Below are positions 1 through 24,641 of a stretch of 64,000 nt of DNA, piece by piece. This DNA comes from Dimorphilus gyrociliatus (lineage: Eukaryota; Animalia; Annelida): NCBI GenBank assembly GCA_904063045.1, contig CAJFCJ010000014.1, forward strand, positions 62,001 through 126,000, given 5' to 3'. The notes under the pieces are model-generated. The model saw nothing but the letters and a program-made list of their open reading frames with translations, did no database searches and was not told the DNA's origin. The translations under genes were made by a program, and so were the position numbers. The stretch's first letter is position 1; each line of letters begins with the position of its first letter.

Positions 1-3000
1 CACAATCCTCCTTTAAGACCAAAAGATGTTTGACAACTTGTACATTTGAGCTCTACTCCATCTAATAAGCAAGTTTTGCATCCAATTGGACAAGGCACAC
101 ATAAATTATTATTTGATTTGTAATATCCACTTTTACAAGATGAACAGGATAATTGATTGCTTGTTGAATCAATACTGCATCCATTGCAACCAGTTGGACA
201 CAACTTACAATTTCCATTTGAAAGGGTACTATTTGCTGTATTACAAGATTGGCATATTGTTTGAGTGCCAGATCGAATAGAGATTTCACATCCAGCCTTA
301 TTTTTGTAGCATTTCTGATCATCAGAATTATAGAAGAATCCAACCTTGCACTTTCCAACATCACATTTATGTTGTCCAGCTGTTGAACATTCCATGCAAT
401 TTTCATCACACTCTGAAAAATTAGCAAAATAGTCATTATCTCTCTCAAAATTATCATTTATAAAAAATTATTGATACCTTCACATGTATTTGGTGTTGGA
501 GATGTGTTTAGGAAAAATCCTTGTTTACAAATCTTTGGTAGAATATTATTAGAAGTAAAGCTTTCATATTCACAAAATGCTATTCCTCTTTCTCCACATG
601 AAGTACATGTTCCATCTGTTCTGTGCTTGATAAAGCCTTCATTGCAGCCATCTCCCAAACAACTAGTTGCATCTGTACACATATTACAGTTTGATATACA
701 AGGAACACAGCTTCCACCACTATCTAAAAAGTATCTATCATTGCATAATAGACATTTATCATTATCAGAAGTATCTTTAGTACATAATTTGCAATTGCTT
801 ATTGAACACTGTTGGCAACTGAAATCTTTATCACTGAAAGAACCTCCATTTGAACAACCAAATTGTAAGCAAATAGAGCTTTCATCATTTACTGGATCAA
901 TTCTACATTCAGAACAAGGAAGTGGAGATGTTGGACATCTGATACATTTCTTTGATGAATTAAGAACATAACCAGAATTACAGTTTGTACATGTTGTGGT
1001 TGGTGAGCCACTTAAATTGACAGTACATTCTAAACAATTTGCTTCACATGGAGTACAAGTTCCAGTTCCAGTTGAAATCAAACCATAGTTATCTTGACAT
1101 TTTGAGCAAGATTGAATAGAATTGGGTGAGGAATTACTTTCAGTGCATACTTTGCACCCAGAAGTGAATGAATTACAGTCAAGACATTGACTTTGATCAT
1201 TGGATAAAATAAAATTATCTACACATCTGCTGCAGCCACATGATTGATCTGCATTTACATTTAAACTGTCAGATTTACAGTGTTGAAAGTTTGCTGCAGT
1301 GCATAAAGTGGCTGTGGTTCTTGGAGTGTTAGTAATTGTTGGAGTAGGTGTTGTTGAAGTAGGAGTTGTTGGTGTAGGAGTTGTTGGGGTTGGAGTTGTT
1401 GGAGTAGGAGTTGTTGGTGTAGGTGTTGTTGGGGTTGGAGTTGTCGGGGTTGGAGTTGTTGGAGTGGGAGTTGTTGGAGTAGGTGTTGTTGGGGTTGGAG
1501 TTGTTGGGGTTGGAGTTGTTGGAGTAGGAGTTGTTGGTGTAGGTGTTGTTGGGGTTGGAGTTGTCGGGGTTGGAGTTGTTGGAGTGGGAGTTGTTGGAGT
1601 AGGTGTTGTTGGGGTTGGAGTTGTTGGGGTTGGAGTTGTTGGAGTGGGAGTTGTTGGAGTAGGAGTTGTTGGTGTAGGTGTTGTTGGGGTTGGAGTTGTT
1701 GGGGCTGGAGTTGTTGGAGTGGGAGTTGTTGGAGTAGGAGTTGTTGGTGTAGGTGTTGTTGGGGTTGGAGTTGTCGGGGTTGGAGTTGTTGGAGTGGGAG
1801 TTGTTGGAGTGGGAGTTGTTGGTGTAGGTGTTGTTGGGGTTGGAGTTGTCGGGGTTGGAGTTGTTGGAGTGGGAGTTGTTGGAGTAGGAGTTGTCGGGGT
1901 TGGAGTTGTTGGAGTGGGGGTTGTTGGAGTTGGAGTTGTTGGTGTAGGAGTTGTTGGGGTTGGAGTTGTTGGAGTAGGTGTTGTTGGAGTGGGAGTTGTT
2001 GGTGTAGGAGTTACTGCTCTGATTTTTCTTAAATCTCTTTTTACAACTAAAGTTGATATAGAATTAGGTAAATAATCTGAGCAGTCTTTATTTGGAAGAG
2101 TAAATTTTTTACCATTTACACACTGAGAATCCAAACATTTCAAGCCATTATCAATCATTATACATTTTTCACAATTGTCCAATGAGCTACAAGATATACA
2201 ACTTTCAATTTGCCCATTTGGATTTAAACTTTCTCCATAGCCATCAAGACACTTTAAACATATGTTTTCACCAGATCTTTTTTTACATAATCTGCAGCCA
2301 TCAGGACATGGAAAACAATTTCCACTTGTATCGTCATATCCATAATTGTCAGCACATTTTGAAGGATAACACATAGGGGTTGATGCTTGATTGTCTTTAA
2401 AGTAGCATTTTAGACAATTCAATGGACATTCTGTACGCATTTGAAGACAATTTTAGATAATAAAAACAATAAAATATTCAATTATGATTGTCACCTGAAC
2501 AAGTTCCATCATTCTTTTTTGTCCATGATTGTCCTTGTTGATTTTCAATACAAGAATGACTGGCGCCATTGCCATTGCATTCAGTTTGTGAAGTTGATGG
2601 ATTGTATGTACAAAGTAGACAATTTGAAGGACATCTACTACATAAATTATCCGAATTTAAAGCATAACCAGACTCGCAACCATTTGTTGAACACACAAGG
2701 TCACCATTGGAATGATGACATTTGAGACAGTTCCTTGGACACAAGTTGCACACCCTTTGATTCAAAAGAGTGTAGTCAGCTTTGCATTTTTTGCAGGTAA
2801 TAACACCATTTTGTTGAGAACACGAATTGCAGTTGAGAGGACAGGGCGAACAAGTTACGCCATCTACAAAATATCCATTTTGGCATTTAATGCATACAGT
2901 TGTTCCAGAATTTCTGCTACAATCTATACACATTGGATGGACACTGCTACATGGTAAACATTCCTTTTGGTCAATTAAAAGATATTGATTCGATAAGCAT

Positions 3001-3864
3001 TTTGTGCAGGTTTTTCCATCAGAACAAGTGAGACAACCAGATATTGCAGAAGAACACAAGTTACATTTAATAGATGCTGTTGATATATCTCTATAGGCAT
3101 TGGAATGGCACTGATTGCAAGTGATACCATTTTCCATGGAGTAGGAGCAAGATTTACAATTCTGTCCACATGCTATGTAAAAAGAAATAGGTAAATAATC
3201 TGTTTCTTTGATGTAGCTTTTCTAGATGATGTTGAAAGAAATACTTACATTTGCAATTGTTCATCGTATCCAAAGTATATTCATTTTTGCAAATATCGCA
3301 AACTGTTCGAGATTGCTGATTACTCCAGGTGCATTTTGAGCATGATGAAGAACAGGCGATGCATTGTTTGGAAACGTTATTGAAGGTGTAATTATCAAAG
3401 CACTGATTGCATTGAATGGAATTTGTACAAGTTTTGCAGGCGGTCGGACATTCTTAAGGGGAAATTGGATAAAGGTTATTAATAATTATAGCTTATAGAT
3501 GTTTGAAAATGTTATAGCTTTGTTTTCTATTGAAAGTTGTAAACTTAACAATGTATGAAATGATAATGTGGTCGAGATTCAATTTAAATTAGTAATTTTC
3601 GCAGCAAGATTGTATGTTTCCTACCTGTACAGATTGTCTTATCTTCGTTTAAAGCCTTTCCAACTTGGCAAAATGAGCAGAAAGTTTTAGCTGTTACCGT
3701 TTGTCCATTTTGGCAATTGTAGATTTCAGTTGTTGTAATTCGAGCCGCTTGAAGACCAACTGCAAAAAGATGTTTCGAAAAGTTATTACAAACTAGTTGA
3801 ATCTACATGACGATAGCCTACCAAACAGTAGAAGAGAGGAGATGATCAAAGATTGAATCAGCAT
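1..3864 (-). CDS. Secreted Cys-rich furin-like/CxxC repeat surface protein, paralogue 1, with (PTPTT)n mucin spacer; 3' end runs off the window
   Basis: Manual splicing. ATG 3864 (MLIQSLIISSLLLF, signal-peptide-like). Exons 3822-3864, 3625-3759, 3249-3452, 2495-3172, 478-2430, <1-412. GT-AG introns 3760-3821, 3453-3624, 3173-3248, 2431-2494, 413-477 all keep frame. Dense CxxC repeats; near-identical to 11281-15658. Confidence 0.9.
1338..2012 (-). repeat. Coding 15-bp minisatellite, about 45 units, encoding (PTPTT)n
   Basis: Plus-strand unit GTTGTTGG(G/A/T)GT(T/A/G)GG(A/T) repeated in tandem; 1441-1500 and 1561-1620 are identical. Confidence 0.97.
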
Positions 3865-11280: not shown

Positions 11281-14200
11281 TTAAAAAAGAATATAGTAGA
11301 TTATAGATAAACCAAAACAAGCAAATGAAAACAGAATACGTCCAGTACCAGCTTTTCCATCTAAATGCCAAGTGTTACAATTTTCACCATAACAGCACTT
11401 TTCACAATGATTAAAACCATCAATCTTATCACATTTCTCATTTTCAGATATTTCAACACATGTTCTGTTTGAGCATTTCCTTGAGTACAATATACCATCT
11501 TTTGATTCAATTCTAAATGCCCAACAATCCCCATTACCACATTCAACCTCCTTTACTTTATCTGATAAAGTATTATTTCCATTTATTGCTTTACCACATT
11601 CACTTTCATTTCCTTCACATTCATAACATTTGCGCCCACATTCTCTGTTATGGTTAATTGGATAGAATCCACTTTTACATTTTAAACATTCTCTTCCATG
11701 AACACATAGTCCACAACCATTAATAGGACAGGAAATACACTCTGATTCATCATCTTTCAGAGCAAAGCCTACACCACACGTCAAACATTTTGCATTCTTT
11801 GCACTTGATTCAGAAGTGCAGGTTTCACAGTTTCCAAAGGTAACATCAGAGCAAAGCCTACAAATTCCATCACTTTGAAGAGAGTATCTGTTTGAATTGC
11901 ATTCTGTACAGATTGAATTTCGTTGAGAGTTAGCAATACATTTTTTACAATTGGATGGACAAACTATACATTGGCCATCTGAAGTTTTTGCATAGCCATC
12001 ATAACACTTTGAACATTCATATCTCTTATTATATGAGCATTCACTACAGTATAATGGACACTTTCCACAATTGTTGCTGTTCACATAAAACTTGTCAGCA
12101 CACTTTTCACAAATCATAGAATTGTCATCAAATAGACAACTTTCACATTCAGAAGTATCACAAGATTCACACAATCCTCCTTTAAGACCAAAAGATGTTT
12201 GACAACTTGTACATTTGAGCTCTACTCCATCTAATAAGCAAGTTTTGCATCCAATTGGACAAGGCACACATAAATTATTATTTGATTTGTAATATCCACT
12301 TTTACAAGATGAACAGGATAATTGATTGCTTGTTGAATCAATACTGCATCCATTGCAACCAGTTGGACACAACTTACAATTTCCATTTGAAAGGGTACTA
12401 TTTGCTGTATTACAAGATTGGCATATTGTTTGAGTGCCAGATCGAATAGAGATTTCACATCCAGCCTTATTTTTGTAGCATTTCTGATCATCAGAATTAT
12501 AGAAGAATCCAACCTTGCACTTTCCAACATCACATTTATGTTGTCCAGCTGTTGAACATTCCATGCAATTTTCATCACACTCTGAAAAATTAGCAAAATA
12601 GTCATTATCTCTCTCAAAATTATCATTTATAAAAAATTATTGATACCTTCACATGTATTTGGTGTTGGAGATGTGTTTAGGAAAAATCCTTGTTTACAAA
12701 TCTTTGGTAGAATATTATTAGAAGTAAAGCTTTCATATTCACAAAATGCTATTCCTCTTTCTCCACATGAAGTACATGTTCCATCTGTTCTGTGCTTGAT
12801 AAAGCCTTCATTGCAGCCATCTCCCAAACAACTAGTTGCATCTGTACACATATTACAGTTTGATATACAAGGAACACAGCTTCCACCACTATCTAAAAAG
12901 TATCTATCATTGCATAATAGACATTTATCATTATCAGAAGTATCTTTAGTACATAATTTGCAATTGCTTATTGAACACTGTTGGCAACTGAAATCTTTAT
13001 CACTGAAAGAACCTCCATTTGAACAACCAAATTGTAAGCAAATAGAGCTTTCATCATTTACTGGATCAATTCTACATTCAGAACAAGGAAGTGGAGATGT
13101 TGGACATCTGATACATTTCTTTGATGAATTAAGAACATAACCAGAATTACAGTTTGTACATGTTGTGGTTGGTGAGCCACTTAAATTGACAGTACATTCT
13201 AAACAATTTGCTTCACATGGAGTACAAGTTCCAGTTCCAGTTGAAATCAAACCATAGTTATCTTGACATTTTGAGCAAGATTGAATAGAATTGGGTGAGG
13301 AATTACTTTCAGTGCATACTTTGCACCCAGAAGTGAATGAATTACAGTCAAGACATTGACTTTGATCATTGGATAAAATAAAATTATCTACACATCTGCT
13401 GCAGCCACATGATTGATCTGCATTTACATTTAAACTGTCAGATTTACAGTTTTGAAAGTTTGCTGTAGTGCATGTTTGAGTTGGTAAACTCCTTTTTTGT
13501 ACAGATCTCTTTTTATCGAAATGAATGATAGGAAATGTTGTTTCAAATGGTGGTAGAGTTGTTTCAGTTGATGCTGTTGATGCAATATTTTCTGTAGATT
13601 CTGTTGACGTTGTTGATGCAATATTTTCAGTAGATTCATTTAACGCAGTTGATTCATCTGAAGCAGTTGATGCATCTGATGGAGTTGATTCACTTGTTAT
13701 GGTTGAGACAGTTGATACAGCCGATGCAGCTTTAGAAGTAGTTACAGATTCTGGAGTTGATTGTGATGTAAGTGTTACGCTGTTAGGATGTGTGACTGGA
13801 GAAGAAGTTGCTCCTTCTGTAGTTGTTGAAGGTGTAGAACTTGGAGTTGATGTTGGAGTAGGTAAATCCTCTGAACAATCTTTGTTTGGAAGAGTAAATT
13901 TTTTACCATTTACACACTGAGAATCCAAACATTTCAAGCCATTATCAATCATTATACATTTTTCACAATTGTCCAATGAGCTACAAGATATACAACTTTC
14001 AATTTGCCCATTTGGATTTAAACTTTCTCCATAGCCATCAAGACACTTTAAACATATGTTTTCACCAGATCTTTTTTTACATAATCTGCAGCCATCAGGA
14101 CATGGAAAACAATTTCCACTTGTATCGTCATATCCATAATTGTCAGCACATTTTGAAGGATAACACATAGGGGTTGATGCTTGATTGTCTTTAAAGTAGC

Positions 14201-15658
14201 ATTTTAGACAATTCAATGGACATTCTGTACGCATTTGAAGACAATTTTAGATAATAAAAACAATAAAATATTCAATTATGATTGTCACCTGAACAAGTTC
14301 CATCATTCTTTTTTGTCCATGATTGTCCTTGTTGATTTTCAATACAAGAATGACTGGCGCCATTGCCATTGCATTCAGTTTGTGAAGTTGATGGATTGTA
14401 TGTACAAAGTAGACAATTTGAAGGACATCTACTACATAAATTATCCGAATTTAAAGCATAACCAGACTCGCAACCATTTGTTGAACACACAAGGTCACCA
14501 TTGGAATGATGACATTTGAGACAGTTCCTTGGACACGAGTTGCACACCCTTTGATTCAAAAGAGTGTAGTCAGCTTTGCATTTTTTGCAGGTAATAACAC
14601 CATTTTGTTGAGAACACGAATTGCAGTTGAGAGGACAGGGCGAACAAGTTACGCCATCTACAAAATATCCATTTTGGCATTTAATGCATACAGTTGTTCC
14701 AGAATTTCTGCTACAATCTATACACATTGGATGGACACTGCTACATGGTAAACATTCCTTTTGGTCAATTAAAAGATATTGATTCGATAAGCATTTTGTG
14801 CAGGTTTTTCCATCAGAACAAGTGAGACAACCAGATATTGCAGAAGAACACAAGTTACATTTAATAGATGCTGTTGATATTTCTCTATAGGCATTGGAAT
14901 GGCACTGATTGCAAGTGATACCATTTTCCACGGAGTAGGAGCAAGATTTACAATTCTGTCCACATGCTATGTAAAAAGAAATAGGTAAATAATCTGTTTC
15001 TTTGATGTAGCTTTTCTAGATGATGTTGAAAGAAATACTTACATTTGCAATTGTTCGTCGTATCCAAAGTATATTCATTTTTGCAAATATCGCAAACTGT
15101 TCGAGATTGCTGATTATTCCAGGTGCATTTTGAGCATGATGAAGAACAGGCGATGCATTGTTTGGAAACGTTATTGAAGGTGTAATTATCAAAGCACTGA
15201 TTGCATTGAGTGGAATTTGTACAAGTTTTGCAGGCGGTCGGACATTCTTAAGGGGAAATTGGATAAAGGTTATTAATAATTATAGCTTATAGATGTTTGA
15301 AAATGTTATAGCTTTGTTTTCTATTGAAAGTTGTAAGCTTAACAATGAATTAAAAAATAATGTGGTCGAGATTCAATTTAAATTAGTAATTTTCGCAGCA
15401 AGATTGTATGTTTCCTACCTGTACAGATTGTCTTATCTTCGTTTAAAGCCTTTCCAACTTGGCAAAAAGAGCAGAAAGTTTTAGCTGTTACCGTTTGTCC
15501 ATTTTGGCAATTGTAGATTTCGGTTGTTGTAATTCGAGCCGCTTGAAGACCAACTGCAAAAAGATGTTTCGAAAAGTTATTAAAAATTAGTAGAATCTAC
15601 CTGACGATAGTCTACCGAACAGTAGAAGAGAGGAGATGATCAAAGATAGCATCAGCAT
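11281..15658 (-). CDS. Cys-rich furin-like/CxxC repeat surface protein, paralogue 2 (1312 aa): signal peptide, Ser/Thr spacer, C-terminal Ly6/uPAR-like domain, GPI-type tail
   Basis: Exons 15616-15658, 15419-15553, 15043-15246, 14289-14966, 12647-14224, 11281-12581 total 3939 nt in frame. N-terminus MLMLSLIISSLLLF; C-terminus KCYECEG...KCCYGENCN then GKAGTGRILFSFACFGLSIIYYILF*. Confidence 0.92.
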
Positions 15659-17427: not shown

Positions 17428-18216
17428 TTAGCAGTCGTAATTGTAAAGTACCGAGGAGGAAAAATCGAGTTTAACTAATTTCTCTTCCGTGGTGAAGAAA
17501 TTTCCGACGCCGACGTCTCCCCAACAGATTTTGTCGTCCTCCGAATCGAGTTGTAAGATTTGAATATAATCTTTATAAGAGGAGTTAGACCTTGGATCGT
17601 TTTGTATGAAATTAGCGTATCCACCTATTTTATGACCTCTTCTATTGAAGAACTCTTCAACTACCTCTTCGTGTTTAGAGGGGAATTTATCGATAAATTC
17701 GTCATATTCCATACCAAAGAACTTTTCGAATCTGCAATCTTGCATGCTAACGTAGTCGTAATCTTTCTCGAAGGTTAGACGGAATTGTTTTATGACTGGC
17801 AGAGTGCACGACGAACTTTTCAAGTGATTGTCGACAAACGAAAAATCTGTTTGCCTATTGTTCTTATCGTATTCTTTCACGTAGATAAGCCGAAAATCTT
17901 TCTGATCCGTTGGATTATCGAAATTCATTCCGTAGACGTCGTCCAAAGCCAAGTAGAATTGAAGTAGGCCAGTCTTCGGATACGAGTTCAGAGTCGGTAT
18001 TTCGTTAAAGTTTAATTGGGCTTGGAGAATAAGGGGATTCCCTTTTGAATCGTAAGGATATTCAATATTCTTTGGAAGGCAAGGATATCCACCCAATTTA
18101 CTGTCATCAATATCAACTTTGACCTTTTCATCGCAAATTATAACTTTAACGTATTCTAGTTTAGATTTCTCGATGACATCTCGATATTTTTGCAGTTGAC
18201 GAGGAATATTGGCCAT
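17428..18216 (-). CDS. ywqG: YwqG / DUF1963 family protein, 262 aa, intronless, bacterial type
   Basis: First ATG 18216 (the track start at 18288 is a non-ATG codon). Motifs SKLGGYPCLP, AQLNFNEIP, GLLQFY, DDVYGMNFD, GHKIGGYANFIQNDPR, WGDVGVGNFF, YNYDC match Bacillus YwqG as I recall it, over the full length. Confidence 0.9.
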   Translation of the reverse strand: MANIPRQLQKYRDVIEKSKLEYVKVIICDEKVKVDIDDSKLGGYPCLPKNIEYPYDSKGNPLILQAQLNFNEIPTLNSYPKTGLLQFYLALDDVYGMNFDNPTDQKDFRLIYVKEYDKNNRQTDFSFVDNHLKSSSCTLPVIKQFRLTFEKDYDYVSMQDCRFEKFFGMEYDEFIDKFPSKHEEVVEEFFNRRGHKIGGYANFIQNDPRSNSSYKDYIQILQLDSEDDKICWGDVGVGNFFTTEEKLVKLDFSSSVLYNYDC

Positions 18217-18823
18217 TTGATAGTGTCGATATACTGTCTGTTTATTGAATAGTATCAAAAGATGATAAGAGTGATACGGAGTTTCCAATAGAAATACTGA
18301 ACGAATTAATCGTTAAACTCATTGTCCTAAATCTCAGTGTTGTTGTTCCGCCCCGCCTCCGTTTTATATGTCATCTGTTTTTGAGTAGATCCTACAAGAC
18401 GACAAAAAATAAAGACAGTCAAATTTATAGGATTAATTGTTCTGCTTTCTTGATAAAGTATAACGTGTAATTAGATCAATAGAAGAAATAGCAATGACAA
18501 CAGCAGCAGCAACAACAACAACAACAACAACAACTTTTAGGACTGTAAGCAAGACGGATAAAACTGTAAGTCTTCGACGAAAATTGAAAAAAATTGACAT
18601 AAAAAATCATTTCGTTTCGCCTATAAATAGTGGAAAATTTTCAAATGGCTTTGTTGCTGTCTTAGTTTCTACCGTTTCTTCTGCTTCTGCTTCTGCTTCT
18701 GCTTCTGCTGCTGCTGCTGCTGCTGCTGTTGCTCTGCTACGAAGGTGGACTGCTAAGAAACAAAAGACCTAATACGATCTAAATTGTAGATAAATATCAT
18801 AGTTATATTTCTCGTGTGAAAAG

Positions 18824-18887
18824 GTAATAAGGAACGTTTGACTTTTATTATACAATAGGATTGTTAATTGTTTTCTTCTGCATCTAG
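18824..18887 (+). other. Probable 64-nt 5'-UTR intron of the oxidase-dehydratase gene
   Basis: AAAG|GTAATA donor and TTTTCTTCTGCATCTAG| acceptor 16 nt before ATG 18904; size matches other introns here (62-76 nt); TATAAA at about 18622. Confidence 0.5.
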
Positions 18888-18903
18888 ATTTCGCTTAGGA
18901 AAG

Positions 18904-21900
18904 ATGGTCAAGATTAAAGATTATGAACCTCTTATTAACGTCAGTACCGATCCCATTGGCAGTCTGGAAACTGATGTGTTGATTATTGGAAGTGGACCTA
19001 TCGGTGCTACGTATGCTCGTAAAATACTGGATGAATCGGACGCCAAAGTGTTAATGATTGACATTGGGGCTTTTGGTTCCGTGGTGCCTGGTGAACATTT
19101 GAAAAATACGTCGGTCTTTCAAAAGGATGTCGACCCGTTTGCGAGTGTCATTCGCGCTCATTGGCATAATCTGTCAACTCCGGTCAATAAGGCTCCTACT
19201 CCTACACTTGGTCCCGGAGCGTTTCGAGTTCCGTCGAATAAGCTTGGTACTTATCAGCTAAAAAATCAGAATCCGGATCAAAAGGATGATGATAATATGG
19301 CGGCTGCCGGCGCGACTTATATGGTGGGTGGTATGAGCACTCATTGGACTGCCGCCTGTCCTCGAATGAATGAGTCGGTTGAATTGCCCGATATCATTCC
19401 TTACGAAGAATGGGAAACATTGTATGACGAAGCCGAAAAGTTGTTTAACGTTTCGAGCGATGTTTTCGATCATTCGATCCGTCATAATTTGGTCAAGCAG
19501 ATCCTAAGAGAGACTTACGCCGATGAAATTCCTCTAGAAAAAAACAAGCCGAAAAGTCTTCCTTTGGCGGCGAGACGTCGTATACGCAACAGCGAATTTG
19601 TTGAATGGTCCTCCTCCGCTACAATTCTCGGCAAACACGCCCAAGATCCGAGCGTTATTTATAGAGCTTCGAATCCGTCGTTGGCCTGTAGTATGGAAAA
19701 GAATCGCTTTCGTATTATGGAGCAGCATATCTGTAGGAAATTGTTTCGTAACAAGGAGGGAAATCATATTGAGTATGCACTCGTTGAGAACTTACTTCAT
19801 AAAAGATTCATTAAGATAAAGGCGAAAATTGTTGTTGTTTGCTGTGGTACTGTGCTAAGCGCCCAATTACTATACGCTTCTGATATTCGCCCTCAAAAAC
19901 TTGGTAAATATCTTACCGAACAGCCGATGGCCTTTTGTCAAATTGTTCTCAATCAAGATACTATCGATAGGCTAACTAAGCCCAATAGCGAATTCGCCGC
20001 AACTATTAAAGAGTATCAAAAAAAGAATCCCAACGATCCTATTCCCATTCCTATGAACGATCCCGATCCGCAATGTTATATTCCCGTCTCCGAAGATAGA
20101 CCTTGGCATTGTCAAATTCATCGTGATGCCTTCTCCTACGGGGACGTTGCTCCCAACGTCGATCCTCGTCTAATTGTTGACTTTAGATGGTTCGGTATAG
20201 TTAAACAATCGGAGTCTAATATGGTTACGTTCAGCGAAGAGTACAAAGACTTTCTAGGAATGCCGCAGCCAACCTTTCACTATACGATCGATTCGTCCGA
20301 TAGAATAACGTTAAGTTCAATGATGAAAGATATGTTGAAGGCGGCTACGTCGATGGGTTCGTTCCTTCCCGGCTCGAGTCCGCAGTTTATGACTTCTGGC
20401 CTATCCGCCCACGTAAACGGTGTAACTAGAATGGGAAAGAACGAAAAAGATTCGGTAGTCGATGTTAATTGCAAAGTATGGAATATCGACAATTGCTTTG
20501 TCGGAGGATTGGGAGTATTACCAAAGGCGGCCGCCTGCAATCAAACGTTAACAACGGCCGCTTTGGCAATTCGTACTGTAAATCATATGCTTAAAACGAA
20601 TATGCTATCCTATAAGCATGCCGAAGTTGATTTCACCTACGAGTTGTCCGGTTCTCCCGATTTTCAAAAGTTAAATTTGGAAGGAAACCGACAGGATGGC
20701 TATTGGATTAGTTCGTCGGACATAAATGCTAACGGCTACCAAGATATTATTGGTTATGGTTTGAATGTTGGCGACATTAGATGGTTTGAAAATCCAAACG
20801 CCAACAAAGTCGATGTACCATTGTCAACGGAAATACCAACAATAACAACAACAAAAACGGCGTTGACCGAAAAGAGTACGAATGGTGTTAATGGAGATCA
20901 TAAGAAAGGTGCCCTAAACGGTTCCACTAACGGAAAGCCAGAAAAATGGACAAGTCACCTGATTACGAAGCTAAATCAGCCAGTTGGAATGGATAGTTTC
21001 GATATTAATCAAAATGGCCTTCAGGACATTATTATTACGTCGGAATACGGACCAAATATGGACAACATAAACGAGAAAGGTGGTCTTGTTCATTGGTTGG
21101 AGAATCCCGGCAAGGATAATTTATCAATGGATAAAGAATGGAAAAAGCACTATATCGGAAGATCAACTGGAACGCATAGACTAGTCGTTGGACATTTTAC
21201 CCAAACGGAGAGAATAGAAGTTCTTATTCTTCCGGTTGTCGGAAAAGCCCACGACGTTCATTCGGTGTGCGAAGTGAAACTGTTTACTTCTCCACCGCTC
21301 AACCAACTCGATAAGGTAAAAGAATGGCAAGAGACGATTGTTGACAACGAGTACTTTCACGTTATTCACGGCGTTGAAAAGAAGAAATACCGCAAAGACT
21401 ACTACGGTGACCAATTAGATTCAGTCCTATTGGCTTCGCAAGAGGGTATCACCTACTTGTACTATTCGACCGAACAGAAGAAATTCGTGAAAAAGAATCT
21501 GGCCAAAGGAACGTTGTGCGAAAAGACTACGACCGGCTGGTATGGATGCGGAAACATCACTTCGGGTAGAGTAGGAGACGATCCATTCGCATATTTGGCA
21601 ACGATTGGACCATTCCACGGAAATGTTGTTGCCGTCTATGTTCGAGATAATGCTGTTTCAATCGGCGACTTGGAGCACTCCAAATTCACGCGTTACGTAT
21701 TGGACGTTTACGGAGAGCCAAACGACAAAGGTGAAGGTCCGGGACATTATATTATTGCCAAGGATTTCGACAACGATGGAGATGACGAATTTCTCGTAGC
21801 TCTTCGAGGCGATCCTCCAACTCAAGGAGTCTTTTATTACAAACCATTTGATTTGAGCAAAGGTCAATTTACAAAGTATCAAGTATCAAAAGATTCAGCC

Positions 21901-23070
21901 GCTCGAATTGCAGTTGCCGACTTCAATAAGAATGGTAGATTGGACTTTGCAACAATTGGCTATTCGGTGAAAACCTATTACGAGGCGAAACCTTGCGAAT
22001 TGAATGTCTATTACAATTCGTTCGATTGTTCAGACGTGAAAACGACTTATGAAATCGTATTGGAAATGATGGAGAAGAAAACCAAAGAAAAATCTGACGA
22101 AAAGGAAGATAAATCTTCCCTTAAAACGGAAGTAGTCGCAACTATTCCTTATCAAAGACCTTCGGCAATTCAACAGAGTTACTTTCTAAAGAAGCAACTG
22201 ATAAAAATCCACAAGCACACCATCTCCTTGGCTTATTTACCTCCTAATAGTTCGGTAAAGATACCCAAAGGATTGATGGCGAAGGTATTGGACGGAGCTA
22301 TATACTATAAAACTTCGAATAATGCGCCTACCACCATGGTAAGGAACGTAATCAATCCTGACGGTACGCGATCGATGAAGCTTTCCAGTGAAGATTTGGA
22401 AATTTGGACTGAGGATGAGGATTCAACTTTCCTGTGGATGATACCCGATTTGGAGTATTTAGACGGCGATGTACCATTCATAAGGAGCGTCGAGTCGGTG
22501 GAAGTAAAAGCGAATTTAGTGGACGAAAAAGTCGTACCATTTGGCTTTAAACCTTACAGAGATATGGGATTTTTCAATATGACTGGCTTTACGGTTCAAA
22601 TCGAGAGAGAGAATAAGAAGACCGGCACGATTGAGCTGAAAAAAATATGCCATATTCAATTTTGGTTGGCCGATAAGGGAGTTGATTGCGGAATTCATGA
22701 CCATTCGGAAACTAAAGGAAATGACGCCTTTTGTGAAATTCACGCTTGCTTCTTGAACGGCACTGGTTCCGGTGGAATGTACAAGCATATCGGCGATATT
22801 CACAAGCCATTCAAGGATATGAAAAAGAATGAGTTTTTATATATAAGAGTTCCCAGTGGTTATGAACACGGTCCCCTATGGGAAATCGATGGGAATGGAG
22901 ACCCAAAACGTCGACCTGACGGCAGCGTAATATACCAACCTCATAGATGGATGGCCGGAGAAGGAGATCCAAAGGAGGCAAAGGAGAGTTCGTACGATTT
23001 TTGGATGGCTTGCGAATTAAATCCAACAATTGTCAATTCAAATTTGATTGAAAAGAGGAATCATTATTAA
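18904..23070 (+). CDS. Fusion of pyranose 2-oxidase (GMC flavoprotein) and aldos-2-ulose dehydratase/isomerase-like beta-propeller + cupin; 1388 aa, no coding introns
   Basis: N-terminal part (about 18904-20592): GSGPIG, VGGMSTHW, HCQIHRDAFSYG, catalytic His (SAHVNG) and Asn (CNQTLT). Middle (about 20630-22020): FG-GAP-like repeats DINANGYQDII, DINQNGLQDII, DFDNDGDDEF, DFNKNGRLDF. C-terminal cupin: GIHDHS...FCEIH...PHRW. One uninterrupted ORF. Confidence 0.92.
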   Translation: MVKIKDYEPLINVSTDPIGSLETDVLIIGSGPIGATYARKILDESDAKVLMIDIGAFGSVVPGEHLKNTSVFQKDVDPFASVIRAHWHNLSTPVNKAPTPTLGPGAFRVPSNKLGTYQLKNQNPDQKDDDNMAAAGATYMVGGMSTHWTAACPRMNESVELPDIIPYEEWETLYDEAEKLFNVSSDVFDHSIRHNLVKQILRETYADEIPLEKNKPKSLPLAARRRIRNSEFVEWSSSATILGKHAQDPSVIYRASNPSLACSMEKNRFRIMEQHICRKLFRNKEGNHIEYALVENLLHKRFIKIKAKIVVVCCGTVLSAQLLYASDIRPQKLGKYLTEQPMAFCQIVLNQDTIDRLTKPNSEFAATIKEYQKKNPNDPIPIPMNDPDPQCYIPVSEDRPWHCQIHRDAFSYGDVAPNVDPRLIVDFRWFGIVKQSESNMVTFSEEYKDFLGMPQPTFHYTIDSSDRITLSSMMKDMLKAATSMGSFLPGSSPQFMTSGLSAHVNGVTRMGKNEKDSVVDVNCKVWNIDNCFVGGLGVLPKAAACNQTLTTAALAIRTVNHMLKTNMLSYKHAEVDFTYELSGSPDFQKLNLEGNRQDGYWISSSDINANGYQDIIGYGLNVGDIRWFENPNANKVDVPLSTEIPTITTTKTALTEKSTNGVNGDHKKGALNGSTNGKPEKWTSHLITKLNQPVGMDSFDINQNGLQDIIITSEYGPNMDNINEKGGLVHWLENPGKDNLSMDKEWKKHYIGRSTGTHRLVVGHFTQTERIEVLILPVVGKAHDVHSVCEVKLFTSPPLNQLDKVKEWQETIVDNEYFHVIHGVEKKKYRKDYYGDQLDSVLLASQEGITYLYYSTEQKKFVKKNLAKGTLCEKTTTGWYGCGNITSGRVGDDPFAYLATIGPFHGNVVAVYVRDNAVSIGDLEHSKFTRYVLDVYGEPNDKGEGPGHYIIAKDFDNDGDDEFLVALRGDPPTQGVFYYKPFDLSKGQFTKYQVSKDSAARIAVADFNKNGRLDFATIGYSVKTYYEAKPCELNVYYNSFDCSDVKTTYEIVLEMMEKKTKEKSDEKEDKSSLKTEVVATIPYQRPSAIQQSYFLKKQLIKIHKHTISLAYLPPNSSVKIPKGLMAKVLDGAIYYKTSNNAPTTMVRNVINPDGTRSMKLSSEDLEIWTEDEDSTFLWMIPDLEYLDGDVPFIRSVESVEVKANLVDEKVVPFGFKPYRDMGFFNMTGFTVQIERENKKTGTIELKKICHIQFWLADKGVDCGIHDHSETKGNDAFCEIHACFLNGTGSGGMYKHIGDIHKPFKDMKKNEFLYIRVPSGYEHGPLWEIDGNGDPKRRPDGSVIYQPHRWMAGEGDPKEAKESSYDFWMACELNPTIVNSNLIEKRNHY

Positions 23071-24641
23071 ATAAATAGAGCTAAAAGAAGAAAGGAGAAA
23101 GAAGACAGTAGCAACAATTGAACAAAAATTTGTTCAAACTCTAAATTATAATTTACCAATACAGTTAAAAAGCCTATTGCGTTATAAAATCTCATATCTT
23201 GCGAAATTGACAAAATTGGTTTGAATTCAATTAGTTGAATTGAAAGGTTTTGAAAGCATTTCGAAATGTCTAGCCCACGCTTATTCCGTATTCAGACAAT
23301 ATAGTTGAAATTCTTGTATTTTCTTCGTTCTTTTAGACTGTTTAGTTTCATTCTGGTAAATGTATAGATAGTCTATCGAATTCAATGGATTAACATTGGC
23401 CTATATCTCTGACATTAGCTTGCCATTCGCCTAGATTGATAACCGGCTTCCATACACCGTTCATGTGGTTCCTACTCCTTCAATGGTTTTCGACTGTACT
23501 GGCAGCCGGTGAGAGCAGAAAGTTGATCCTTATTGCTGCAATACTAGGAATGGGCTTTTTCTTTATTGCCGCTGTGAGTGAGGATTATCTGACTACCGTT
23601 TATAGATAGACATTATCGTAGATGGTAACTTTTCCTTCTCCTGCAAAATCTCTTCGATGTAGTTGAATAGGATTTGAATGAGAATTCTTTTAGAGACGAT
23701 ATTTAACGTGAAATTTAGACGTCTCCAAGTAAAAAAGTGATAATTATCTGTGAAAGTTTGCAGATATCCATTTGGGAATAGAATGGAGAATTTTAGTGTA
23801 ACTTTCATCGACGCTAAAATAGACTGACGCAAGTAATTTTCGTCAAGAAATTCCAGCTGAATTCTAGCCAGGATTTAGTTAATTGCGAAGTACTTGGTTT
23901 CCAAAACCAAAACAAACTATTCGAAGAATCTGGTCGGCCGTCCATTAGAAAATCCAGATTAGTAAAGGAGAGGACGAACTTTGAATTTGAGATATTTGAT
24001 CTATGAGATTGCTGCGAAGATAATCGTACGAAGAAGAGGAAAGAATTATTGAGGATTATAACAAATACCAATGGAATTATCATTGGCAGTAGTGAGAGAT
24101 TGAAAATTTAAACGACGCTCTACTTCGTTCTCTCTGATAAACTAATCTGTTTCAACGAGAATAAAAGACACAATTGCCTGTCAACTTTGATAATTAAATC
24201 ACTTTTGAACCGACTTTCGATCAGGTTTGCTTGTAAAAAATTCATAAACCCTAATTAATCACGTTCAAGTCTTTTATTCATTCAATCATTACAAATCTCT
24301 AGCAAAAGTATATAACAAAATAATGCTTTCTTTATATGTGTTCTAGGTCATTTTAGCGTTATTGTTCTTTTTTATAGCCTAAGAGAGGAAAAAGATGATT
24401 CGGATAGTGTGCTTAGGGTCAAGCACTCTTCTCTAGGCCGTTTACCACTTTTCAAGAGGATTCCTTTATCTTTCCACTTTTTTTCGCTTTCTCCTCTCAG
24501 TTCGCCCCTGTGCCTCTTTAATATTCAATTAAATCAATCCTTGGTTTGTTAATTGAGAATATAGAAGAGTTTTCTTTGAAAAAGAATTTATACAACCGTG
24601 TACGCCATCTATCGAGCAGAAATGGTAATGAACAAGTGGAC

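Follow-up and report, generated by a model that had tools for sequence, protein, structure and literature searches.

The stretch of DNA analysed here, 64,000 nucleotides long and referred to below as the window, lies on the 2.24-Mb contig CAJFCJ010000014.1 of assembly GCA_904063045.1, which is listed as Dimorphilus gyrociliatus (PMC10212961). It contains on its forward strand a long open reading frame (ORF) in which a pyranose 2-oxidase (P2O) is followed by an aldos-2-ulose dehydratase (AUDH). The frame extends over 18868..23070: read from a TTG it codes for 1400 amino acids (aa), and read from the ATG at 18904 for 1388 aa, with no internal stop codon. The coding sequence (CDS) of the 1388-aa fusion protein, stop codon included, is intronless, occupies 18904..23070 and gives a product identical to the protein called on this contig, P0001. 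The ORF list and the translation bear out an earlier note on this DNA, which had described a single 1388-aa ORF at 18904-23070; the motifs STHW and DAFSY, the His at 20410, the Asn at 20539 and the cupin metal-ligand motif from 22696 were all found where that note had placed them.

The pyranose 2-oxidase domain (aa 21-565; 18964..20598) was delimited by the match to structure 9fl2, by the mapping of individual residues and by an identity of approximately 50% to bacterial pyranose oxidases. A linker (aa 566-583; 20599..20652) leads from the end of the oxidase to the first propeller blade. It is just ~18 residues long, since the oxidase extends to about residue 565 (the 9fl2 alignment reaches query residue 564) and residue 19 of the AUDH structure 4a7k aligns at query residue 584, and it is predicted to be disordered, with a predicted local distance difference test score (pLDDT) below 50 for residues 1-17 of the structural model described below. 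The AUDH half (aa ~584-1373) consists of an AUDH-type beta-propeller (aa 584-1040; 20653..22023), assigned from Pfam family PF22301, the 4a7k alignment and fold matches, and then of an AUDH cupin domain (aa 1073-1373; 22120..23022), assigned from PF18637 and from the alignment of its HDH..EIH motif with HNH..EIH of 4a7k. The Pfam search found the GMC, AUDH propeller, FG-GAP and AUDH cupin families: GMC_oxred_C at aa 438-555 (1.2e-17), AUDH_beta_propeller (PF22301) at aa 726-914 (2e-50), FG-GAP_3 at aa 954-1016 (6e-11) and AUDH_Cupin (PF18637) at aa 1073-1373 (4.4e-50, 301 of 308 profile positions). GMC_oxred_N scored 18.1 bits, under its curated cut-off of 23 bits.

Sequence searches of the PDB showed that aa 21-564 are colinear with positions 11-538 of the pyranose oxidase 9fl2 (E 1.6e-121). 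This enzyme, OPOx of Oscillatoria princeps, oxidises glucose and has flavin adenine dinucleotide (FAD) covalently bound to His125, a substrate loop with Asp373, Phe375 and Tyr377, and the catalytic pair His470/Asn514 (PMC11650716). In the worm protein the Rossmann FAD-binding motif (GxGxxG) is present as GSGPIG at aa 29-34; STHW corresponds to S145-W148 (19336-19347), with H147, in the context MSTHWT, aligned to the flavinylation site His125; DAFSY corresponds to D408-Y412 (20125-20139), within HRDAFSYG, with D408, F410 and Y412 aligned to D373, F375 and Y377; and H503 (20410) and N546 (20539) align to the pair H470/N514. The worm enzyme therefore resembles OPOx and the bacterial P2Os in its colinear domain, covalent-FAD His, substrate loop and His/Asn pair, and differs from them in being encoded in an animal nucleus and in carrying an 820-residue C-terminal extension.

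Fungal pyranose 2-oxidases matched aa 21-564 at E ~1e-95 to 1e-101. They contain an inserted segment that is absent from the worm oxidase, the alignment with 4mig breaking at 331/332. When the oxidase half alone was compared with the database, hundreds of bacterial proteins annotated as pyranose oxidase were retrieved with 46-53% identity, from Ktedonobacteraceae, Rubrobacter, Actinomadura, Pilimelia, Bradyrhizobium and Rapidithrix. Among the bacterial enzymes called 'pyranose oxidases' many are actually glycoside 3-oxidases (G3Ox), described as having no covalently attached FAD (PMC11650716). Because the glycoside-3-oxidase-type structures 7qf8, 7dve and 8qve scored far lower (1e-46 to 1e-53) and G3Ox lack covalent FAD, the oxidase half is read, from its sequence, as a true C2 pyranose oxidase of bacterial type. 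The earlier note had identified this half as a P2O, an enzyme that it cited from wood-decay fungi such as Phanerochaete: the family and the catalytic residues stand, and the Phanerochaete type gives way to a bacterial one on the evidence of the PDB search, of the homologues retrieved and of the tree described below.

The C-terminal half, which the same note had taken for a propeller followed by a cupin with HDH..ExH..H metal ligands, proved by Pfam, alignment and fold search to be just that. Residues 674-1372 matched the Phanerochaete aldos-2-ulose dehydratase 4a7k with an E value of 2.2e-97, which, like that of the oxidase half to 9fl2, cannot be put down to chance; residues 19-458 of 4a7k align to the propeller, starting at query residue 584. 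Propeller residues H758, H819 and H822 align to H155, H212 and H215 of 4a7k, respectively; H758 and H822 are invariant across 19 homologues from fungi, rotifers and metagenomes, and the H819 column is not. The cupin motif is H1265-D-H1267, from 22696, followed by E1278-I-H1280 and H1322; these residues, H1265, H1267, E1278, H1280 and H1322, together with H1347, are invariant across the same homologues.

An AlphaFold model of aa 566-1388, covering the AUDH half only, had a mean pLDDT of 79, its inter-domain orientation being uncertain (predicted template modelling score, pTM, 0.58; global TM score of 0.48 to 4a7z). The top three PDB fold matches of this model were the AUDH entries 4a7z, 4a7k and 4a7y, at E ~2e-61, the next match being at 2e-10. 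Between blades 1 and 2 lies a low-complexity insertion of 43 residues (aa 636-678; 20809..20937), which has no structure in the model (pLDDT below 50 over model residues 71-113) and is poorly conserved, in that P0001 and the related fusion protein P0002 (see below) do not align there. An in-frame 3-nt insertion polymorphism, ATT, was found after 20819 in the RNA contig of data set X6 (see below).

The worm half thus shares with the P. chrysosporium AUDH (4a7k/4a7y/4a7z) the propeller and the cupin, with residues matching H155, H212/H215 and HxH..ExH, and differs from it in being only ~28-33% identical, in the 43-residue insert after blade 1 and in lacking a lectin domain. The C-terminal ricin-type lectin domain (PF14200) was not found in the query, which stops at about residue 731 of the 900-residue 4a7k chain. 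PF14200 is present in the Lentinula homologues and absent from the ascomycete, rotifer and metagenomic AUDH homologues, so that the lectin is an accessory of one lineage and not a defining feature of the family. Of the identification as AUDH proposed earlier, the family and the metal residues are upheld, with the correction that the lectin domain of the basidiomycete enzyme is absent.

Reads and contigs from independent data sets were mapped to the window to follow the gene in DNA and RNA. The RNA came from runs of the worm itself and from a coral (tank) metatranscriptome of 2024, X6; the years covered were 2017, 2020 and 2024. A single X6 contig of 4354 nt spans 18741-23097 with a 64-nt intron removed. 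In the RNA data sets X6, X2 and X5 the contigs start in a first exon within the 5' untranslated region (5'UTR; 18741..18821, the beginning being a lower bound of the transcript start) and join it to 18886, the spliceosomal intron (18822..18885, GT..AG) being absent from these three data sets at the joint 18821>18886, and the joint itself being absent from the DNA run X1. No ATG occurs in the spliced 5'UTR. The median intron of the host is 66 bp, and neither operons nor trans-splicing occur in it (PMC7854359). The 3' end (23066..23120) is marked by an ATTAAA signal that overlaps the stop codon and by the ends of the transcript contigs, the X6 contig reaching 23097 and pieces from X2 reaching 23120.

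The junction of the two halves (20599-20652) is crossed by an X2 contig, 18750-21343, and single contigs of constant depth span it in both X2 and X6. DNA coverage in run X1 stays level, at ~440 across the gene and 415-480 on either side of it. The G+C content at third codon positions (GC3) is 0.43 for the fusion gene and 0.37-0.40 for the neighbouring host genes; local GC is 40-43%, against a background of ~34% in the window. The same window bears animal genes, among them a rhodopsin-type G-protein-coupled receptor, an SNF transporter and Rost, a homologue of rolling-stone. These findings show that the fusion gene truly belongs to the nuclear genome of the annelid and is expressed, being represented by one spliced mRNA contig. 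The proposal that this is an animal gene for one polypeptide was supported by the annelid assembly, the animal neighbours and the RNA contigs across the junction; the locus is not an inserted contaminant, the depth being even, the intron of host size, the GC3 host-like and animal genes lying alongside.

A second fusion protein, P0002 (1387 aa, run SRR31837527), is colinear with P0001 through the junction and 66% identical to it, and keeps every catalytic motif, including H147. The identity is 76% in the oxidase, 61% in the propeller and 62% in the cupin. Since P0002 is a colinear fusion with its catalytic motifs kept, the fusion is taken to be old, and it has been maintained. At 66% protein identity synonymous sites would be saturated, which makes the ratio of non-synonymous to synonymous substitution rates against P0002 unsuitable, and the spectrum of within-species variants was used in its place. 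The strain represented in X6 is 1.1% diverged, with 48 differing positions; 28 of the 39 CDS changes listed fall at third codon positions. Among 38 variant codons 25 are synonymous and 13 non-synonymous (synonymous in the oxidase, 11 of 13; in the AUDH half, 14 of 25), and most of the others are conservative. The variants show purifying selection on the fusion gene.

The architecture was found to be extremely rare. In a search of 5.8 billion clusters only P0001 itself and P0002 combine both halves, and in an exhaustive HMMER search of 1.84 billion cluster representatives with aa 189-1388 as query only P0002 matches across both parts; for the other 149 matches listed, the best-scoring stretch lies wholly within the oxidase part or wholly within the AUDH part. 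The ESM Atlas returned no fusion cluster, just GMC-oxidase clusters at 0.72-0.73, below a meaningful score. Besides the rotifer AUDHs described below, the database searches gave no other annelid or animal match, and a search of the literature found no paper mentioning either enzyme in an annelid or a P2O-AUDH fusion. Apparently no pyranose oxidase had been seen in an animal before. Other additions to AUDH were met in gene models: that of P0015 (Mesotaenium endlicherianum, 1331 aa) adds an alpha-amylase domain, which would be another link of AUDH to a glucan-active enzyme, and that of P0009 (Rotaria sp. Silwood1, 1776 aa) adds phospholipase-D domains.

The origins of the two halves were analysed in separate quick-mode maximum-likelihood trees, support in the propeller tree being given by the Shimodaira-Hasegawa-like approximate likelihood ratio test (SH-aLRT). 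The oxidase tree unites the two annelid sequences (99%) with the stand-alone, transcript-derived sequences P0023 (SRR13378177) and P0024 (ERR1719206); this group falls within the bacterial-type enzymes, apart from the fungal clade. In the propeller tree the annelid sequences join the metagenomic sequences P0143 (695 aa, with propeller and cupin) and P0148 in a group with 98% support. A split supported at 96% leaves this group on the bacterial side and sets it apart from a clade of fungi, bdelloid rotifers and a giant-virus-like sequence. Approximately unbiased (AU) tests rejected a clade of annelids and rotifers (p 0.0002) and a clade of annelids, rotifers and fungi (p 0.01), both clades having been named after the tree was seen. 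The two trees thus indicate that both halves are non-fungal, the oxidase of bacterial type and the AUDH not of rotifer type. By these placements, and by its absence from the other animals covered by the searches, the fusion gene came from outside the animals and was horizontally acquired.

Two other origins were rejected: a fungal origin of the enzyme pair, since in both trees the halves fall apart from the fungal sequences, and shared ancestry with the rotifer AUDHs, which the propeller tree and the AU test (p 0.0002) contradict. The bdelloid rotifers Adineta and Rotaria resemble the worm in having AUDH in animal genome records, and differ in that theirs is a stand-alone protein of ~780 aa, without the oxidase domain, 36-39% identical and clustering with fungal and giant-virus-like sequences. 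The rotifer AUDHs are taken as likewise horizontally acquired; besides the worm and the bdelloids no match to AUDH was obtained in other animal genomes in these searches. On the metagenomic contig L089 (L089:179-2436, JGI 3300038657), P0148 is followed by separate small ORFs with pieces of the AUDH cupin, which suggests that this locus is an intron-containing eukaryotic gene or a frameshifted one.

The linkage of the two enzymes is known from elsewhere. In several wood-decay fungi the P2O gene immediately adjoins a pyranosone dehydratase gene, in a route to cortalcerone (PMC4256170; PMC7910265). In Phlebiopsis gigantea and Phanerochaete the same two families are linked and are read as converting glucose via glucosone to cortalcerone and H2O2; the fungi have two genes and two proteins, whereas the worm has one ORF and one mRNA, with neither half of the fungal lineage. 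Approximately 80 loci with AUDH-type propellers, mostly without a cupin, were found in bacterial genomes. Seven Streptomyces loci (L037, L039, L043, L044, L050, L053 and L087) have a P2O gene ~1.1 kb upstream from an AUDH-propeller gene, on the same strand; in the operon at L039:1274-7236 the order is GH15 (glucoamylase/trehalase-like), P2O, a xylose-isomerase-like TIM barrel and the AUDH-propeller. As in the worm, P2O (42-43% identical) and propeller (40-42%) are linked; unlike in the worm, the genes are separate, the propeller lacks the AUDH cupin and, in L039, the TIM-barrel gene lies between them. In the trees, neither annelid half has its closest relatives among the Streptomyces genes. 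The linkage of these genes is independent genomic evidence that the two predicted activities work together.

AUDH-type genes were also found beside genes of family GH31. A giant-virus-like contig of 82 kb (ENA ERZ25039475 contig_51218), with genes for Rpb5, a D5-type DUF5906 helicase-primase, DNA ligase, MutS and HNH, carries at L005:7047-12067 a gene for a complete AUDH of 688 aa, comprising propeller and cupin, which is arranged head-to-head with a GH31 gene coding for 963 aa. Among the best 120 of 663 matches to this GH31 protein there was none from D. gyrociliatus. Cyanobacterial AUDH-propeller genes are on the same contig as, and often adjoin, a GH31 gene of ~1000 aa related to the viral one; such pairs occur in Oscillatoria princeps, Pseudanabaena, Scytonema, Plectonema, Vasconcelosia and other bacteria (L016:5974-11583; also L008, L009, L010, L013, L014, L024 and L040). 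GH31 is the family that contains alpha-1,4-glucan lyase, and the viral pair could be an 'anhydrofructose pathway' cassette; we know of no described bacterial function for the propeller/GH31 pair. The fungal, Streptomyces and GH31 gene pairs together indicate that AUDH-type enzymes are repeatedly tied to enzymes generating 2-keto-sugars. The worm gene is an extreme case of this linkage of AUDH to substrate-generating enzymes.

The locus probably encodes a single horizontally acquired fusion enzyme in which a covalently flavinylated P2O and an AUDH/isomerase together would make a pyrone and H2O2. By analogy with the homologues, the FAD domain would oxidise D-glucose or 1,5-anhydroglucitol at C2 with O2, giving glucosone or 1,5-anhydrofructose and H2O2; the tethered propeller site would dehydrate the glucosone or anhydrofructose; and the cupin site would isomerise the intermediate to a cortalcerone- or microthecin-type pyrone. 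Claesson and co-workers reportedly assigned, in 2012, the dehydration to the Zn site of the propeller and the isomerisation to that of the cupin. The proximity of the tethered sites may limit the escape of the reactive dicarbonyl, and a D2 oxidase tetramer bearing two AUDH dimers would fit geometrically, although this is speculation. The worm would probably use the enzyme to defend itself chemically, or to keep in check the microbial film that it inhabits and grazes. That the animal makes a pyrone antibiotic and H2O2 from glucose or glycogen-derived anhydro-sugars through this one enzyme, for protection of itself or its egg cocoon or for management of the biofilm, is put forward more tentatively, as a possibility that falls somewhat short of being probable.

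Several points weigh against such a pathway. The products and the physiological substrate are read across from homologues with 28-50% identity. The catalytic or metal-binding role of H758, H819 and H822 and the ligand roles of the cupin residues are presumed. As far as the trees can place them, the nearest relatives of both halves are metagenomic or transcript sequences only. Neither a signal peptide nor a peroxisomal targeting signal of type 1 (PTS1) was found in the 1388-aa protein, which therefore looks cytosolic and fits a secreted defence poorly; why an enzyme that makes peroxide should apparently sit in the cytosol is the chief puzzle. In addition, the RNA depth in X2 rises towards the 3' end, roughly doubling twice. 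This is probably due to library bias, and a shorter transcript of the AUDH half alone is possible.

The same fusion could instead be catabolic or detoxifying, removing dietary or endogenous 1,5-anhydroglucitol and anhydrofructose that arise when algal material or glycogen is broken down, or yielding useful H2O2 while the AUDH disposes of toxic glucosone as a form of metabolite repair. The adjacency of AUDH-propeller and GH31 genes in cyanobacteria and on the giant-virus-like contig ties the family to the anhydrofructose pathway and would suit such a role, as would the lack of a secretion signal; the same pair of enzymes in fungi is, however, read as a route to cortalcerone (PMC4256170; PMC7910265), and we consider the catabolic role less likely than not, though by no means far-fetched. 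Disposal and defence are hard to separate, because the products of AUDH are themselves antimicrobial pyrones.

It is improbable that the oxidase half resembles a glycoside or C-glycoside 3-oxidase and that the AUDH half acts on another keto-sugar. The misnaming of many bacterial 3-oxidases mentioned above would allow for this, and so would the xylose-isomerase-like TIM barrel of the Streptomyces L039 cluster, a fold used by C-glycoside deglycosidases. A glycoside 3-oxidase identity of the N-terminal half was rejected, however, on the PDB scores, on the conserved covalent-FAD His, G3Ox being described as lacking covalent FAD (PMC11650716), and on the D-x-F-x-Y loop.

Just as little weight can be given to a two-gene cassette, in which the long ORF yields two separate proteins through an internal promoter, internal initiation or cleavage of the linker. 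Met567 sits at the domain junction, the linker is predicted to be disordered, and the depth in X2 rises towards the 3' end, all of which would favour such a cassette; against this, single contigs of constant depth span the junction in X2 and X6, the host has neither operons nor trans-splicing (PMC7854359), and the frame is open across the junction in two taxa 34% diverged in protein.

Contamination or an assembly chimera, with microbial DNA misjoined into a worm contig, was rejected as having next to no likelihood: the fusion gene and its DUF1963 neighbour are of bacterial type with intronless coding parts, and local GC exceeds that of the window, but the even DNA depth, the spliced GT..AG intron of host size, the host-like GC3, the animal genes on the same contig and the recurrence of the same transcript in the independent RNA data sets of 2017, 2020 and 2024 make this very unlikely.

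Both enzymes, their cooperation and the adjacency of their genes in fungi are already known (PMC4256170). The novelty appears to lie in the covalent joining of the two, in the occurrence and expression of the fusion in an animal and in its non-fungal ancestry. If the fusion enzyme acts as proposed, it would be the first one-polypeptide version of the P2O-AUDH pathway in any organism, and a compact example of gene transfer giving an animal the means to produce an antimicrobial, in a worm that can be cultured and has a genome of 74 Mb. As a natural catalyst it would also take glucose to cortalcerone or microthecin within a single protein; these compounds attract interest both as antimicrobials and as platform chemicals (furylglycolic acid). 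The fusion would further serve as a 'Rosetta stone' for the widespread, uncharacterised bacterial AUDH-type propellers that are encoded next to a P2O or a GH31 gene: taken with these bacterial gene pairs, it offers a testable functional hypothesis for a large family of unannotated bacterial propellers. The gene is thus relevant to horizontal gene transfer in animals, to natural-product biology and to biocatalysis.

Upstream from the fusion gene lies a divergent, bacterial-type YwqG/DUF1963 gene on the reverse strand (17428-18288; 262 aa as called, 17428..18216; Pfam DUF1963 8.7e-58). It is ~450-500 nt from the start of the fusion transcript and covered by RNA, and its nearest Atlas clusters are all bacterial. 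Two repeats within the intergenic and promoter region shared by the two genes, 18487-18542 and 18669-18740, were masked in the read mapping; the second, a (GCT)n microsatellite, immediately precedes the mapped 5'UTR. Elsewhere in the window, on the reverse strand, two pairs of long ORFs are arranged alike, at 458-3137 (660 and 219 aa) and at 12627-14931 (535 and 219 aa); both pairs are without a Pfam match and have a very low GC3 of 0.17-0.20.

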